Assembly (NCBI GenBank): GCA_002269645.1
Contig: NIVC01002870.1
Coordinates: 1 to 64,000, forward strand
Length of the DNA stretch: 64,000 nt
Direction: 5' to 3'
Source of the DNA: Macrostomum lignano
Taxonomy: Eukaryota
Part shown: piece by piece, positions 1,181 to 6,983 of the stretch
Layout: the number at the start of each line of letters is the position of its first letter
How positions within the stretch are numbered: the stretch's first letter is position 1
Made by a program: the position numbers and the translations under genes
The notes under the pieces: generated by a model
Told to the model about the DNA's origin: nothing
Seen by the model: the letters and a program-made list of their open reading frames with translations, nothing else
Databases searched by the model: none

Positions 1181-4100
1181 ATGGAGAAGCCAGCAACCGC
1201 GGAGCGTCCGCACGACCTGGTCAGCTATCGGGACGCGCGAGCTCTCCGACCTCACCGTAGTTGTCGACTCCGAGTGCGAGCTGCCGCTGCACAGATTCCC
1301 GCTCTACATCAAGTCTGACTATTTCCGCGAGCGGGCCTCGGAGTCCCGGGTGAGCCTGCCGGCCAAGTTTCCCGGCGGTTCCGCCTGCTTCGAGCTGGTG
1401 GCCGACTTCTGCTACGGCAAGCGCATCGACATCGGGCCGGACAACTGCGTGCAGCTGAACGCCGCAGCCAAGCTGCTCGGCATGGGCGGCAGGGACAACC
1501 TGGCCGACCTCACCGACCGCTACCTGGACGAGATCCTGCGCTCCGCCCAGCACAGCCGCTCGATGGGGCCCGTGGTTGAACTGCTGGCCAAGGCGACGGC
1601 GATTTCCCAGGCCGACAACGCGGACGACGGCGAGGCGGAGGCGGATCCGGCGGTGAAGGCTATCGCCGAGCGCTGCTTCTCGACTCTGCTGGACGCCTGG
1701 ACTCGGCAGCAGCCGTTCGGCTCCGGCGGCGCCGTTGGCGAGCGGCTGCTGCGACTGCCGTTGACTTGGTTCGCCCGGCTGGTCGGCGCAGCCACTGCAG
1801 ACAGCGACAGGTGCGAATTTTCAATGGAGCAAGTGTGTTTAGTGTTTTTCTCTGAGCTTCAGAGTTTCCTTTCCCCGGCCAATTTGTACAGCAGATGTCG
1901 GCTGCCGACTGTAAGCTCTAGAATGGAAATCATTGAGGGCGGAATTGCTGAGATGTCAAGGCTTATTGGGGGAATTGCTGAGATGTAAGGATTATTGGGG
2001 GAATTGCTGAGATGTCAAGGCTTATTGGGGGAATTGCTGAGATGTCAAGGCTTATTGGGGGAATTGCTCAGATGTAAGGATTATTGGGGGAATTGCTGAG
2101 ATGTCAAGGCTAATTGGGGGAATTGCTGAGATGTCAAGGCTTATTGGGGGAATTGCTGAGATGTCAAGGCTTATTGGGGGAATTGCTGAGATGTAAGGAT
2201 TATTGGGGGAATTGCTGAGATGTCAAGGATTATTGGCGGAATTGCTGAGATGTCAAGGATTATTGGGGGAATTGCTGAGACGTCAAGGCTTATTGGGGGA
2301 ATTGCTGAGATGTCAAGGCTCTCGGGGGGGGGAATTGCTGAGATGTCAAGGCTCTCGGGGGGGGGGGAATTGCTGAGATGTCAAGGATTATTGGGGGAAT
2401 TGCTGAGACGTCAAGGCTTATTGGGGGAATTGCTGAGATGTCAAGGCTTATTGGGGGAATTGCTGAGATGTAAGGATTATTGGGGGAATTGCTGAGATGT
2501 CAAGGCTTATTGGGGGAATTGCTGAGATGTCAAGGCTTATTGGGGAATTTCTGAGATGTCAAGGCTTATTGGGGGAATTGCTGAGATGTCAAGGCTTACA
2601 GGTGGGAATTGCTGAGATGTCAAGGCTTATTGGGGGAATTTCTGAGATGTCAAGGCTTATTGGGGGAATTGCTGAGATGTCAAGGCTTATTAAGGGAATT
2701 GCTGAGATGTCAAGGCTTATTGGGGGAATTGCTGAGATGTCAAGGCTTATTGGGGGAATTGCTGAGATGTCAAGGCTTACAGGTGGGAATTGCTGAGATG
2801 TCAAGGTTTACGGGGGGGGAATTGCTGAGATGTCAAGGCTAACAGATGGGAATTGCTGAGGTGTCAAGACTGAAAGGTCAGAAACTACACGACCTCTAAT
2901 AAATCATAAAAAACTAATTTACATTCTTTGTTGTCTCCCCAACGGGGGGGGGGCGCTGATTGCTACTAAGAAGTTCTCTAAACGTCAGCCTCCGCAACGC
3001 AGGCACCGCCGGGCCCTGGCCGAGCTGTCGGCCCGCTACCTGCACCGGGTCTTCCTGCGCGACGCTCGGCTGGAGAAGAGCAAAGCAGCAGCGGCCGCGT
3101 CGGAGGCGGACGGCGACGCCGAGCAGCGGCAGGCCGCCGGCTCCGACGCCGAAGCCGACGAGTCGTCGTCTACACGTCAGCAGCGAGACGGCGACGGCGA
3201 CAATGACGGGAAGAAGGAGAAATTGCCGGGCCGGCGCGATTGGAGAAAGACGAGGCCCAGCGAGGACGACGCGGAGCGCGAAGACGACAGTCAGTTCGTG
3301 CCACAGGAGCCAGCCGGCCAGGTGCTCGACCAGGTGATCCTGGCGCTGCCGGAGTCAACTCCGCTGGCCGAGGTAATCAGCGCCGAATGGATTCAACAAG
3401 CCCTGCGGATCAGCGAGAAATTCGGCTGCCAGTGCCGCGGCCGGCTGCTGCAGCTGGCGGGCAACTCGCTGCACAAATTCCGACCGGAGGAACTGCATCA
3501 GATGGCCTCGCCTGTGCTGTGCGACATTGTGGGCAGCAGCGTGCGGAACAAGGGCGTGCAGCCGGAGGTGCGTCTGGATTGAGCTGCTCTGCTTTTGTGC
3601 CGGGGGGGGGTGCCTGACGATCGAGCGATGCACTTGACATTTTCTCAAGGCTTTGGCTGATGTCTGAGGAGGTTGGCTGATGTCTGAGGGGGTTGGCTGA
3701 TGTCTGAGGGGGTTTGCTGATGTCTGAGGAGGTTGGCTGATGTCTGAGGAGGTTGGCTGATGTCTGAGGAGGTTGGCTGATGTCTGAGGGGGTTGGCTGA
3801 TGTCTGAGGGGGTTGGCTGATGTCTGAGGGGGTTGGCTGATGTCTGAGGGGGTTGGCTGATGTCTGAGGGGGTTGGCTGATGTCTGAGGGGGTTGGCTGA
3901 TGTCTGACGGGGTTGGCTGATGTCTGAGGGGGTTGGCTGATGTATCTGCTACGAGTAATTGAGGCCCTTCCCCGCTCCACCCGCCTAGGTGCTCGCCTGC
4001 GTCATTGACAACCACCTGTTGGACCTAGCTCGCGAAGGCAGCCTCGAGCCGGACGACTTTGTCAAGCTGGCCGGCAGCGTCCCGGCCGAATTTCGGGACG

Positions 4101-6983
4101 GACACGATACCCTGTACGAAGTGGTGGAGACTCTGTTGGGTTCTGGTGAGAGTCTTGATGCCTGTTCCGTTCGGCTGTAATTTTGGAAGCAAAAAATTAA
4201 AATTTCTATCGACTTTCTTACCATTTCTCACCCTCCCGACAGGAAAGTCGATTCCTGACGACCAGCAGCAACAGATTCTCGGCATGGTGGATCTGTCACG
4301 CTGCGACGTTGAAACTCTTCAACGCGCTCTAGAGAAAGGCGTCATGCCTGCCAAGACTGTCTGCCTTGCGGCTATCGAACTGGCTAGGAAACTGCGACAT
4401 CAGCTGGACTCGAGGACCGGGGGCAGCGGTGGCGCCGGTGGCGGCCTTCGACCGCGAGTGAGTTTTTTATTTGTTGAAAAAATTAACTTCATCACTGATG
4501 ATGTAAGATTTTTATCAGCGTAAAGCTGTTGAAAGAATGGTTTTGCGTCAGCCCCAACCATGTACGCAGGGGACGGGAAGTTAAATGGTCCAGAGGGCAG
4601 GGGCTGTCTCTCCGCCTTCCTCTTATTGGCTAGAAATGTCTTTAGTCAACCCACCCCGAAAACCGCCACCTCACTCCGTAATGTACACAGGGAGAGAGAT
4701 AAAGAAATGGTTCATTGGGACGAAAAAGCTGATTCTCTACCCTGTCTGCCCGCTATTGGCTGGGAAACTGTCCCGCAACAATTAGCGTCTAAGTCAAACC
4801 ACGCCCCAAACCCCCACCTCACGCCGAAATGTACACAGCAGGGAGAGAGAAGAGCGAGAGAATGAGAGGATTCAGAGTGTGTCAATTCAAAAACCAGGGC
4901 ACCTCATGCGATGATTATACTGATGATTAAGTATAGAAGTTCGTTTGTAGCCATTTTTGTTTGCCTTTTAAATGTCTTTTCATTAAAATAAACGGCGTAA
5001 AAAATCACTTCTGCCTCCTAAAAGCTCAACGACTGGCAGCAACATCAAAGCGATATCTTGCCGTCTAACTGTCATAAAATTTTCGATAAGATCCGTCAGA
5101 AGCAGCTCGTGTCTGCATTCGCCAGACTGCCGTCTCGCACTCGGTTTGAGTGCTACAAGCGCATCAGATATGGCCGCAGCCGTGACGCCTTTGCTGGCTG
5201 CCAGTCTGTGCGTAGGAGCAGATATGGTTGAGCACAGCTGAGCACAGCTGAGCACAGCTGAGCAGAGCGGTCTTAGTTTGTAGATACCAGTTGCTTGCCT
5301 TATTGATTTTGTGGGCCTGCGACGCTTCAATTGTGAAGGAAAATTGTGTGACCTGTTTAGAACCAAGAATGACGACAATAATTGCAATAGCTCTGCGGCC
5401 GGCAGGTGGCAACTTGATTTCAAGTCGAATTTGTCTACTTAATGATTGTTATTCATGGTAGCATAAAACTGATTCAGTGCATTTTGGCTTTTAATTTTGA
5501 CAGACCGAAAGAAAGACAGACAGACAGACAGACAGACAGACAGACAGACAGACAGACAGACAGACAGACAGACAGACAGACAGACAGACAGACAGACAGA
5601 CAGACAGACAGACAGACAGACAGACAGACAGACAGACAGACAGACAGACAGACAGACAGACAGACAGACAGACAGACAGACAGACAGACAGACAGACAGA
5701 CACACAGACAGACAGACAGACAGACAGACAGACAGACAGACAGACAGACAGACACACACAGACAGACAGACAGACAGACAGACAGACAGACAGACAGACA
5801 GACAGACAGACAGACAGACAGACAGACAGACAGACAGACAGACAGACAGACACACACACACACAGACAGACAGACAGACAGACAGACAGACAGACAGACA
5901 GACAGACAGACAGACAGACAGACAGACACACACAGACAGACAGACAGACAGACAGAGAGACACACACACACAGACAGACAGACAGACAGACAGACAGACA
6001 GACAGACAGACAGACAGACAGACAGACAGACAGACAGACAGACAGACAGACAGACAGACAGACACACACAGACAGACAGACAGACAGACAGACACACACA
6101 GACAGACACACACAGACAGACAGACAGACAGACAGACAGACAGACATACAGGCAGATAGACAGACAGACAGACAGACAGACAGACAGACAGACACACAGA
6201 CACACAGACACACAGACAGACAGACAGACAGACAGACAGACAGACAGACAGACAGACAGACAGACAGACAGACAGACAGACAGACAGACAGACAGACAGA
6301 CACACAGACAGACAGACAGACAGACAGACAGACAGACAGACAGACAGACAGACAGACAGCCAGACAGACAGACAGACACACAGACAGACAGACAGACAGA
6401 CAGACAGACAGACAGACAGACAGACAGACAGACAGACAGACAGACAGACAGACAGACAGACAGACAGACAGACAGACAGACAGACAGACAGACAGACAGA
6501 CAGACAGACAGACAGACAGACATACAGACAGACTCCCGCAACTCCCCAATGCAGGATGAGATCCGCAGCGGCAGTCGGTTCGCCCGCCGCTCTGAGCCGC
6601 CGTCGGCCGTCTCCGGGTTTCACCGTCAGCCGCAGCTCCACGTCGGCGGCGGCGGAGTCGGTCTGGGGAGCAGCAGCGTCCACTACGCCGATCCTTACAT
6701 TGGCAGAGGTGATTTTTGAGTCAGCTGACTTATAAAAAGTATTTATAATCCCCAAGTTGGAGTTTTCACAAGAGCTTATTTGCACTTTTCAGGCTACCTG
6801 GATGATGATGCGTACGGGGAAACTGCGGAGCTGAGCTCGGGCAGTCGTTACACTGCTCAGGATTACGATGTGGATCTGCTGCTTCTAGAGGCAGAGAGAA
6901 GTGCCCAGCAGCAACAACAGCAGCAGAGGTCGGCAAACTATCCTTATTATCAGGCGCAGTACGGGCGCTCCAGAAGGTGGTGA
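1181..6983 (+). CDS. BTB/POZ plus NPH3 domain protein (NPH3/RPT2-like), 6 coding exons
   Basis: Exons ~1181-1810, 3003-3567, 3989-4145, 4243-4457, 6555-6708, 6793-6983, all with GT/AG sites and matching phases. The BTB region [14 protein letters not shown]...[17 protein letters not shown]...[14 protein letters not shown]...NL matches the NRL BTB pattern (LHKFPL/FPGG.EAFEL.AKFCYG/N...LRCAAEYLEM). [46 protein letters not shown] matches the NPH3 pattern (VD.YLAEIA.D.NL...KF..LA...P..AR..HDGLY). The ATG at 1181 is 1 nt out of frame with the BTB frame, so the start is uncertain. Confidence 0.85.
1936..2870. repeat. 30-bp minisatellite (gggaattgctgagatgtcaaggcttattgg), about 30 copies, in intron 1 of the NPH3-like gene
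   Basis: Direct 30-nt periodicity. Produces the spurious [10 protein letters not shown] ORFs. Confidence 0.95.
3652..3945. repeat. 20-bp minisatellite (ggttggctgatgtctgaggg), about 14 copies, in intron 2
   Basis: Direct 20-nt periodicity. Confidence 0.95.
5368..6532. repeat. Dispersed ~130-bp head sequence followed by a ~1-kb (ACAG)n microsatellite, in intron 4
   Basis: (ACAG)n runs 5499-6532 with AC interruptions. The 5368-5498 flank is homologous to 11965-12080. Confidence 0.95.

Follow-up and report, generated by a model that had tools for sequence, protein, structure and literature searches.

A BTB-NPH3 gene with a frameshift in the flatworm Macrostomum lignano and its probable place in an old animal gene family

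The flatworm Macrostomum lignano carries a genuine gene of the BTB-NPH3 (NRL-type) family, which textbooks describe as plant-specific. The gene lies at 1181-6983 on the forward strand of the window, the 64,000-nucleotide stretch of contig NIVC01002870.1 (assembly GCA_002269645.1) analysed here, and belongs to a set of several near-identical duplicates within the genome. Taken as a whole, the locus is probably a genuine and old metazoan BTB-NPH3 gene, present in the window as a frameshifted copy and encoding a putative CUL3 adaptor or scaffold. Recent papers still term NPH3 plant-specific, and we found no published description of animal BTB-NPH3 genes in the literature. We consider it likely that BTB-NPH3 is an ancient module and not a plant invention, kept by sponges, cnidarians, spiralians and hemichordates and seemingly missing from standard model animals. 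On this view, animal members would make up an unstudied class of CUL3 adaptors or cortical scaffolds that has a conserved C-terminal docking motif of its own. If true, the ancestral, pre-phototropin function is open to direct test in M. lignano, which is amenable to transgenesis and RNAi. A family reputed to be plant-specific occurs in many marine and non-model animal phyla.

Gene structure and genomic context

The window gene consists of six exons, and all five introns have GT-AG borders with mutually consistent phases. The spliced product matches BTB (PF00651) at 23.6 bits, above the curated cut-off of 20.5 bits, and NPH3 (PF03000) at 41.3 bits (E 1.9e-10; cut-off 27 bits), the latter over profile positions 181-252 of 258 only. 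The remainder of the NPH3 domain was recovered by aligning a profile of 57 animal relatives with a profile of 46 streptophyte NRLs, in which 439 columns are aligned from the BTB to the NPH3 end (hhalign probability 100%, E 3.1e-61). Scanning Pfam at E up to 1 retrieved nothing besides BTB and NPH3, hence no BACK, Kelch or MATH domain. The BTB plus NPH3 architecture was already proposed in the sequence-only reading, and all motifs quoted there are found in the spliced translation, collinear with plant NRLs.

Exon 1 (1181-1810) opens with an ATG at 1181-1183 and closes at the donor CAG/GTGCGA (1810/1811). The BTB frame is +1 with codons phased from 1182, and the Pfam stretch of the BTB/POZ domain is encoded at 1239-1487 (residues 20-102 of the 636-aa translation). 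Most of intron 1 is occupied by a satellite of about 31 copies of a 30-bp unit (1941-2868). Exon 2 (3003-3567) encodes an acidic disordered linker and the middle NPH3 helices, and is followed in intron 2 by a second satellite with 14.6 copies of a 20-bp unit (3653-3943). The beginning of the C-terminal NPH3 block is encoded by exon 3 (3989-4145). The PF03000 match (3989-4301, residues 399-470) is split by intron 3 (4146-4242), which is 97 nt long, of phase 1, and located within the Gly codon of LLGS/GKS. Exon 4 (4243-4457) completes the NPH3 domain and starts the disordered tail, which continues in exon 5 (6555-6708). The protein ends in exon 6 (6793-6983), where a short helix is predicted and GRSRRW (SRRW at 6969-6980) precedes the TGA stop at 6981-6983. 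All six exons are on the forward strand.

The product is 98% identical to the GenBank 'hypothetical protein BOX15_Mlig026640g1', and the gene models of GCA_002269645.1 derive from RNA-seq (PMC5730564). DNA of 95-98% identity with the same neighbours is present in the assembly, and a paralogue of roughly 50% identity lies on scaffold NIVC01000143.1. The neighbours are a TIR-domain gene and an ARMC3-like gene on the reverse strand at approximately 8306-16931, with coordinates carried over from an annotated counterpart (L001 17707-26156), whose 874-aa product has ARM repeats and a PF14381 domain. Intron 4 contains a repeat in which roughly 1 kb of (ACAG)n comes after a unique head (5231-6533, also delimited as 5357-6533). 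A second copy, as previously noted, lies within the span of the ARMC3-like gene at 11961-12474, and its head shows 77.5% identity across 169 nt.

Distribution and ancestry of animal BTB-NPH3 genes

Named orthologues occur in homoscleromorph sponges (Porifera), an octocoral (Cnidaria), a rotifer (Rotifera), parasitic flatworms (Platyhelminthes), annelids (Annelida), nemerteans (Nemertea), molluscs (Mollusca) and a hemichordate (Hemichordata). The names were taken from 30 representatives of the best 150 of 872 matches, with more added from the best 120 entries of a further search. Every named match was identified as either streptophyte or metazoan, with no protist or fungal names among the named top matches. 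Uncharacterised invertebrate entries with an NPH3 domain had been mentioned in the sequence-only reading and are now named in eight phyla. They include orthologues or close paralogues such as Haliotis rufescens 'BTB/POZ domain-containing protein At5g48800-like', Xenia sp. 'root phototropism protein 2-like', Capitella CAPTEDRAFT_221817, Opisthorchis felineus CRM22_004774 and a Ptychodera flava protein. Like the M. lignano protein, these have the BTB at their very start, and their lengths are comparable, but they share 19-35% identity with it, and the acidic, Q-rich insert of M. lignano (residues 261-294, disordered) is unusually long. A broad orthogroup lowers the novelty of the window gene, as that reading had allowed, although the orthogroup itself is uncharacterised. 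The impression of a plant-type gene oddly embedded in a single animal has to be abandoned.

In a neighbour-joining tree (448 columns, 100 replicates), streptophytes formed a clade with a bootstrap of 100 and streptophyte algae at its base. All animal sequences fell outside, and no placement of M. lignano or other animal genes inside the streptophyte NRL clade was found. Sponges (100), molluscs (100) and flatworms (78) were recovered as groups. The tree is effectively unrooted, its deep nodes are weak (bootstrap 12-48), and its sampling of protists is unsystematic. The position and phase 1 of intron 3 are common to five bilaterian genes, namely the window gene, its M. lignano paralogue and genes of Tubulanus, Ptychodera and Ostrea. 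Intron positions are not identical between animal genes and streptophyte NRLs. The placement of animals outside the streptophyte clade together with the shared bilaterian intron points to metazoan genes of old, vertical descent that are distinct from streptophyte NRLs, and disfavors recent transfer. Of the two origins raised initially, ancient retention or horizontal transfer, old metazoan descent is the one retained.

Two other origins for the gene were weighed against old vertical descent. Contaminating plant or algal DNA, or a misassembly, would be suggested by the plant-specific reputation of the family and nothing else. This explanation is effectively refuted because the locus recurs with the same animal neighbours in an independent record, the introns hold M. 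lignano-type satellites as well as the repeat shared with the neighbour, and other flatworms are the closest relatives among named matches. The ARMC3-like neighbour, the shared repeat and the matching locus all agree with the initial view of a host gene. An ancient horizontal transfer between animals and streptophytes, in either direction and in place of common eukaryotic descent, could explain why named matches are confined to these two groups, and might also fit the intronless state of several animal genes (Xenia and one Corticium gene). Such a transfer is nevertheless unlikely. Animal sequences are not nested within the plant clade, in which algae are basal, and the family covers sponges, cnidarians and bilaterians, broadly tracking phyla. 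Bilaterians also have the intron in common, and the event would need to predate crown animals.

Frameshift and fate of the window copy

The reading frame of the window copy is disrupted near its start. Compared with a 98%-identical sister copy in GCA_002269645.1, whose reading frame is intact, a 2-bp deletion with an adjoining substitution at 1235-1240 on the forward strand changes GACACCGGCGAG to GACGCGCGAG. The 2 bp absent at about 1237/1238 shift the frame at codon 19, so that the ATG at 1181 is out of frame with the downstream BTB and NPH3 regions and its ORF ends after 45 codons. The BTB frame of the window copy has no ATG upstream of residue 101, and an uninterrupted ORF from start codon to stop was searched for in the window copy and not found. 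The broken ORF places protein production from this copy in doubt, and judged from its sequence the copy may make no protein. The deletion is the sole indel in the 1.9-kb coding sequence, compared with about 1 indel per 310 bp in flanking DNA. Between both copies, dN/dS is 0.17 (17 synonymous and 9 non-synonymous changes). The frameshift was overlooked in the sequence-only reading.

The window copy is either a decaying or recently disabled duplicate, or the product of an assembly error. A pseudogene in the making, in which a redundant copy lost the BTB-NPH3 protein through a real deletion at codon 19 after recent duplication, is a serious candidate short of being probable. The lesion is complex and located outside any homopolymer, unlike a typical long-read homopolymer error, and the BTB frame lacks an early in-frame ATG. 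The M. lignano genome also has extensive blocks of at least 95% identity (PMC5730564), so the loss of a copy would be costless. On the other hand, the coding sequence is otherwise undamaged, with canonical borders at every splice site and a low dN/dS, hence any loss would have to be very recent. The same constrained appearance, interrupted by a single indel, argues for an assembly or consensus error in a normal expressed gene like the sister copy. M. lignano assemblies were built from noisy long reads across collapsed or duplicated regions (PMC5730564). We regard such an error as a real possibility, if less than an even one, as the lesion is more than a simple homopolymer slip. Much less probable is that the frameshifted copy is translated after all, with spliced-leader trans-splicing to an in-frame acceptor supplying the ATG. 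The spliced leader of M. lignano has ATG at its end (...TTGCATG) and about 30% of genes are estimated to be trans-spliced (PMC8629364). Candidate AG acceptors at 1162-1163, 1171-1172 and 1192-1193 all keep the phase of the BTB frame, and a pyrimidine-rich stretch precedes the one at 1162-1163. This argument is purely positional, however, and in the intact sister copy these acceptors would give rise to an out-of-frame upstream ORF.

Predicted structure and putative function

The AlphaFold2 model of the sister-copy protein has pLDDT above 90 across the BTB and a helical domain. Regions 261-294 and 518-600 are disordered, with pLDDT below 50 at 518-600 and 622-637, which places a disordered C-terminal region downstream of the NPH3 domain. 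Foldseek matched the BTB fold of BTB-BACK-Kelch/KBTBD and MATH-BTB adaptors at 1.6-2.2 A. For KBTBD4 and SPOP, both CUL3 adaptors, the match continues beyond the core BTB, and the sequence profile likewise extends into the post-BTB helices (3-box and start of BACK) of KBTBD2, A55 and KLHL3. The M. lignano protein differs from these adaptors in having no BACK, Kelch or MATH match, and neither Foldseek nor the sequence profile found a counterpart of the roughly 300-residue helical NPH3 domain among solved structures. By eye, a candidate phi-x-E CUL3-contact motif with an acidic residue reads A-S-E-S in M. lignano and M-x-D-S in many orthologues; its position is presumed by comparison with the KLHL3 and SPOP motifs.

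We infer from homology that the protein would dimerize through its BTB, recruit CUL3 through the BTB and the following helices, and bind substrates or regulators with the all-helical NPH3 domain and the disordered tail. The tail ends in a conserved [S/T]-x-[R/K]-aromatic-COOH motif. A role as CUL3 substrate adaptor is plausible for the M. lignano protein, which might alternatively act as a membrane-proximal scaffold, in both cases with animal-specific partners and not phototropins. Animals are not known to possess phototropins or AGCVIII kinases, and the partners of animal proteins must therefore differ.

Plant work suggests a different mechanism from that of a CUL3 adaptor. BTB-independent GTPase activity was shown for Arabidopsis NRL5 as well as for six further NPH3 proteins of plants, giving the NPH3 domain a GTPase and trafficking role (PMC11313873). 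The animal protein could accordingly be mainly a trafficking-associated NPH3-domain GTPase, or a RAB/SNARE-binding scaffold as proposed for NRL5, and it is in the C-terminal NPH3 helices that conservation between animal and plant proteins is highest. We consider this doubtful, since among animal proteins the BTB is most conserved, and the predicted model has neither a P-loop fold nor a Foldseek match to any GTPase. The plant study defines no nucleotide-binding or catalytic residues for the NPH3 domain that could be compared (PMC11313873). The CUL3 adaptor or scaffold remains our preferred proposal.

Similarity to streptophyte NRLs (Arabidopsis NPH3, RPT2, NPY/MAB4, NRL5, DOT3 and At5g48800) lies in the collinear order of N-terminal BTB, all-helical NPH3 and disordered C-terminal tail. 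Shared blocks are LHKFPL, FPGG..FE..A.FCYG, D.YL...A, F..LA..P...R..HD.LY and D..+LS. Animal proteins form a separate clade and lack the plant N-terminal extension ahead of the BTB. The plant RxxSxS end (consensus ...RxRRxSxS), a phototropin and 14-3-3 site, is missing in animals and absent from the ends of the M. lignano proteins, which read GRSRRW in the window gene and YSSRKW. Nothing supports the tie to light or polarity signalling once considered for this gene. Many animal entries share an [RK]-aromatic C-terminus, and bilaterian entries share the phase-1 intron. A terminal [RK][WYFIML] is present in 17 of 26 named animal proteins. Cnidarian-type and hemichordate proteins have a YWPF-type tail motif instead.

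Gene model and host genome

The BTB-NPH3 gene lies on the plus strand and, when the window is read and translated, comprises six exons (1181/1182-1810, 3003-3567, 3989-4145, 4243-4457, 6555-6708 and 6793-6983) with a GC content of 65%. All five introns carry GT-AG boundaries and have compatible phases. The 64-kb window contains a single copy of the gene. The spliced translation contains every motif quoted by a sequence-only reading, which had claimed a plant-type NPH3/RPT2-like (NRL) gene in an animal chromosome. The Pfam search it had proposed for the spliced product placed both domains above the curated cut-offs, with NPH3 (PF03000) at 41.3 bits (cut-off 27, E 1.9e-10) and BTB (PF00651) at 23.6 bits (cut-off 20.5). 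Because the PF03000 match is confined to the final third of the Pfam profile, the remainder of the domain was tested separately with profiles. A profile of 57 animal relatives aligned to a profile of streptophyte NRL proteins (n=46) with a probability of 100% (E 3.1e-61) over 439 columns, which run across both domains from the BTB start to the NPH3 end, and this bears out the claim of a whole NRL architecture. The BTB and NPH3 identity predicted for the window gene is genuine, with matches far above chance level.

In GenBank, the product is matched at 98% identity by 'hypothetical protein BOX15_Mlig026640g1' from the free-living flatworm Macrostomum lignano, for which four more entries correspond to a paralogue of roughly 50% identity. 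At the sister locus encoding BOX15_Mlig026640g1 (L001; NIVC01000052.1 in GCA_002269645.1), non-coding DNA is 95-98% identical to the window, and the downstream neighbor, a minus-strand ARMC3-like gene, is found in the window too. Two genes lie upstream of the BTB-NPH3 gene at this locus, one with a TIR_2 domain (L001 2403-3953) and one of 335 aa without a Pfam hit (L001 5714-7367), and their place precedes the window start. The assembly contains 180 Mb of duplicated blocks with at least 95% identity, and its GenBank gene models were built from RNA-seq (PMC5730564).

Tandem arrays dominate the introns and the 3' flank, and array lengths differ between the window and the sister locus. The introns contain a 30-bp unit in approximately 31 copies (1941-2868), a 20-bp unit in approximately 15 copies (3653-3943) and approximately 1 kb of (ACAG)n (5499-6533), while 61-68-bp repeats follow just past the stop codon (7098-7317). 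A unique 'head' precedes the (ACAG)n tract and has a second copy, 77.5% identical, inside the ARMC3-like gene (11961-12474), confirming the repeat family that the earlier reading had noticed in both genes. The repeat common to introns and neighbor, together with the same ARMC3-like neighbor at the sister locus, upholds its view of a host gene. Contamination was ruled out by synteny, repeats, phylogeny and introns. A third (ACAG)n tract at 29337-29823 lacks the 'head'. Many long satellite arrays occur elsewhere in the window (20000-48000), including an 18-bp unit in approximately 85 copies (25505-27031), a 20-bp unit in approximately 123 copies (40200-42679) and a 14-bp unit in approximately 119 copies (43503-45142).

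Distribution among animals and novelty

An exhaustive HMMER search with an M. lignano protein profile retrieved 872 representatives at E <=1e-3 and 63 at E <=1e-30. In word-indexed searches, full-length queries were dominated by poly-Q and acidic runs and matched almost exclusively M. lignano, and trimmed conserved blocks were used instead. Representatives identified by name among the matches listed, plus a cleaned profile search, cover homoscleromorph sponges (Oscarella, Corticium), the octocoral Xenia (auto-named 'root phototropism protein 2-like'), the bdelloid rotifer Adineta, parasitic flatworms (Cichlidogyrus, Opisthorchis, Heterobilharzia), annelids (Capitella, Owenia, Paralvinella), nemerteans (Tubulanus, Lineus), molluscs (Haliotis, auto-named 'At5g48800-like', Physella, Ostrea, Saccostrea, Mytilus, Ruditapes, Mactra, Sinanodonta, Solemya) and the hemichordate Ptychodera. 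Other strong matches identified by name were streptophytes, from Mesotaenium and Chara to angiosperms, and the named matches included no arthropod, nematode or vertebrate name. The BTB-NPH3 orthogroup is conserved, intron-bearing and located on large genomic scaffolds and chromosomes in at least eight animal phyla.

Three published papers confine NPH3 to plants (including PMC11313873 and PMC1257465), and a 2005 survey of 17 genomes recovered BTB-NPH3 in Arabidopsis only (PMC1257465). Our literature searches on Macrostomum, invertebrates, metazoa and the locus tag found no descriptions of animal NPH3 proteins. The window sequence is already deposited with automatic Pfam and name annotations, and the gene itself is therefore not new. 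The window therefore adds a new and so far uncharacterised protein to a known family. It is a single duplicate of a hypothetical protein already in the databases, its reading frame is broken, and the result is modest in this respect. Judged by the sequences compared here, the label 'plant-specific' is wrong for BTB-NPH3, which is of moderate interest for researchers in plant signaling and ubiquitin ligases. Given an animal orthogroup in at least eight phyla, the origin of the family needs rethinking, and any function linked to phototropins or to auxin transport must have arisen secondarily. The role of the BTB-NPH3 core can now be studied in an animal that is amenable to experiment.

The closest relative outside M. 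lignano, P0006 (470 aa), is a single uninterrupted ORF on a Logan ERR14224705 contig of 3865 nt (L002), which may represent a transcript or else a gene without introns from another flatworm. Proteins from environmental JGI/ENA contigs (P0062, P0083, P0060, P0041) form a BTB clade related to the animal BTB-NPH3 group, with C-terminal halves diverged into short repeats (e.g., NLIKMASDVLE, SNLVAGDIL). Where precomputed Pfam annotations were available in this BTB clade, PF03000 was absent (P0083, P0073).

Phylogeny and intron positions

A neighbor-joining tree (448 trimmed columns, 100 bootstraps) grouped the streptophytes as one clade (bootstrap 100) with streptophyte algae split from land plants (bootstrap 99-100). 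No animal sequence fell inside the plant clade. Sponges, molluscs, and Capitella with Paralvinella formed clades at bootstrap 100 each, and the flatworms clustered, M. lignano with the parasites, at bootstrap 78. Support was weak (bootstrap 12-48) for the deep nodes that connect the animal groups and for the placement of the sponges. Exon structures are exact for nine genes, each protein having been spliced exactly onto its own locus. A phase-1 intron that splits the Gly codon in LLGS|GKS (window intron 3, 4146-4242) aligns to a single column in five genes, namely both M. lignano paralogues and the genes of Tubulanus, Ptychodera and Ostrea. Introns are absent from the Xenia gene and from one Corticium gene.

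Tree and introns favor an old gene that was vertically inherited within animals, and they disfavor a recent transfer from plants to animals. Horizontal transfer had been entertained by the sequence-only reading, and a recent event conflicts with the placement of animals outside the plant clade (bootstrap 100) and with the bilaterian intron common to five genes; it was rejected on synteny, repeats, phylogeny and introns. A transfer before crown animals, in either direction, appears improbable. Selaginella and Physcomitrium have in common a phase-0 intron at YLK|xHP, 4 nt from the bilaterian LLGS|GKS intron in the alignment and within the same NPH3-domain loop. An intron common to animals and plants was rejected, and YLK|xHP was not counted as evidence because neither position (4 nt apart) nor phase (0 vs 1) is that of LLGS|GKS. 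The closeness of the two introns could be coincidence or intron sliding.

Frameshift in the window copy

The earlier gene model held for its motifs and spliced product, and failed at its start at 1181 by overlooking a 2-bp frameshift at approximately 1237. The ATG at 1181 is out of the BTB frame, the ORF from this ATG ends after 45 codons and the first ATG of the BTB frame is residue 101. At the lesion (codon 19), the window reads GACGCGCGAG and the sister copy GACACCGGCGAG, corresponding to a 2-bp loss with an adjacent substitution. In tblastn, residues 1-22 and 19-234 fall in different frames. The lesion is the only indel between the two coding sequences, and this rate of 1 in 1.9 kb compares with approximately 1 per 310 bp in flanking DNA. 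Of the substitutions between the coding sequences, 17 are synonymous and 9 non-synonymous (dN/dS 0.17), and most of the latter lie within the disordered linker and tail. One copy-specific difference, the R33C codon TGC, sits approximately 40 bp past the deletion. The window copy, frameshift aside, looks constrained.

The frameshift may be a consensus error, and we rate as about equally plausible a genuine 2-bp deletion by which the duplicate was just disabled. This specific copy is possibly non-functional. More speculatively, trans-splicing might supply a start codon to the BTB frame, which we regard as very unlikely even though the spliced leader of M. lignano has ATG at its end (PMC8629364) and the AG acceptors at 1162-1163, 1171-1172 and 1192-1193 are all in phase with the BTB frame.

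Predicted structure and putative function

An AlphaFold2 model of the sister-copy protein, based on a 57-sequence alignment, reached a mean pLDDT of 80, with 399 residues above 90. The model predicts a BTB domain with an N-terminal helix (residues 13-124), a continuous all-helical domain (approximately 130-254 and 298-511), an acidic disordered insert (261-294), a disordered tail (518-600) and a short helix (601-621). Foldseek searches against the PDB matched the BTB only, with Nac1, ZBTB and BCL6 at 1.6-2.2 Å. Structural likeness to the CUL3 adaptors KBTBD4 and SPOP covers the BTB plus the helices following it, and the sequence profile extends past the BTB into the helices behind it in KBTBD2, vaccinia A55 and KLHL3. 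A whole-protein sequence search of the PDB produced one marginal BTB match only. Profile and Foldseek searches returned BTB domains only, and no solved NPH3 fold among PDB entries. At the presumed position of the phi-x-E motif by which KLHL3 and SPOP contact CUL3, inspection gives A-S-E-S for M. lignano and M-x-D-S for many orthologues.

The C-terminal end is [RK][WYFIML]-COOH in 17 of the 26 named animal proteins, with SRRW/SRKW in M. lignano, SSRW in Paralvinella, HRY/HRI/HRF in molluscs and YRY in Adineta. The extreme C-terminus, encoded at 6969-6983 in the window, is conserved across distant orthologues though the preceding tail is disordered, and it looks like a short linear docking motif. 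We propose that the protein would be a BTB-dimer scaffold, with CUL3 recruited via the BTB and 3-box region and partners bound by the NPH3 domain and by a putative regulated docking motif at the C-terminus. The main alternative, which we consider doubtful, is by analogy a trafficking-GTPase role as proposed for Arabidopsis NRL5, a protein whose catalytic residues are not defined (PMC11313873). Plant NRL proteins end in RxxSxS, the phototropin/14-3-3 site, an ending that the animal proteins lack. The suggested link to light signaling finds no support, because this phosphosite is absent and the plant partners of NRL proteins are, to our knowledge, not known from animals. A cnidarian-type group, comprising ENA/Logan proteins of approximately 560 aa (P0196-P0229) and the Xenia protein (P0232), as well as the Ptychodera protein (P0013), carries a YWPF-type motif near the C-terminus, [SP]YWPF[TNM]D (FWPY in Ptychodera), which replaces the [RK]-aromatic end.
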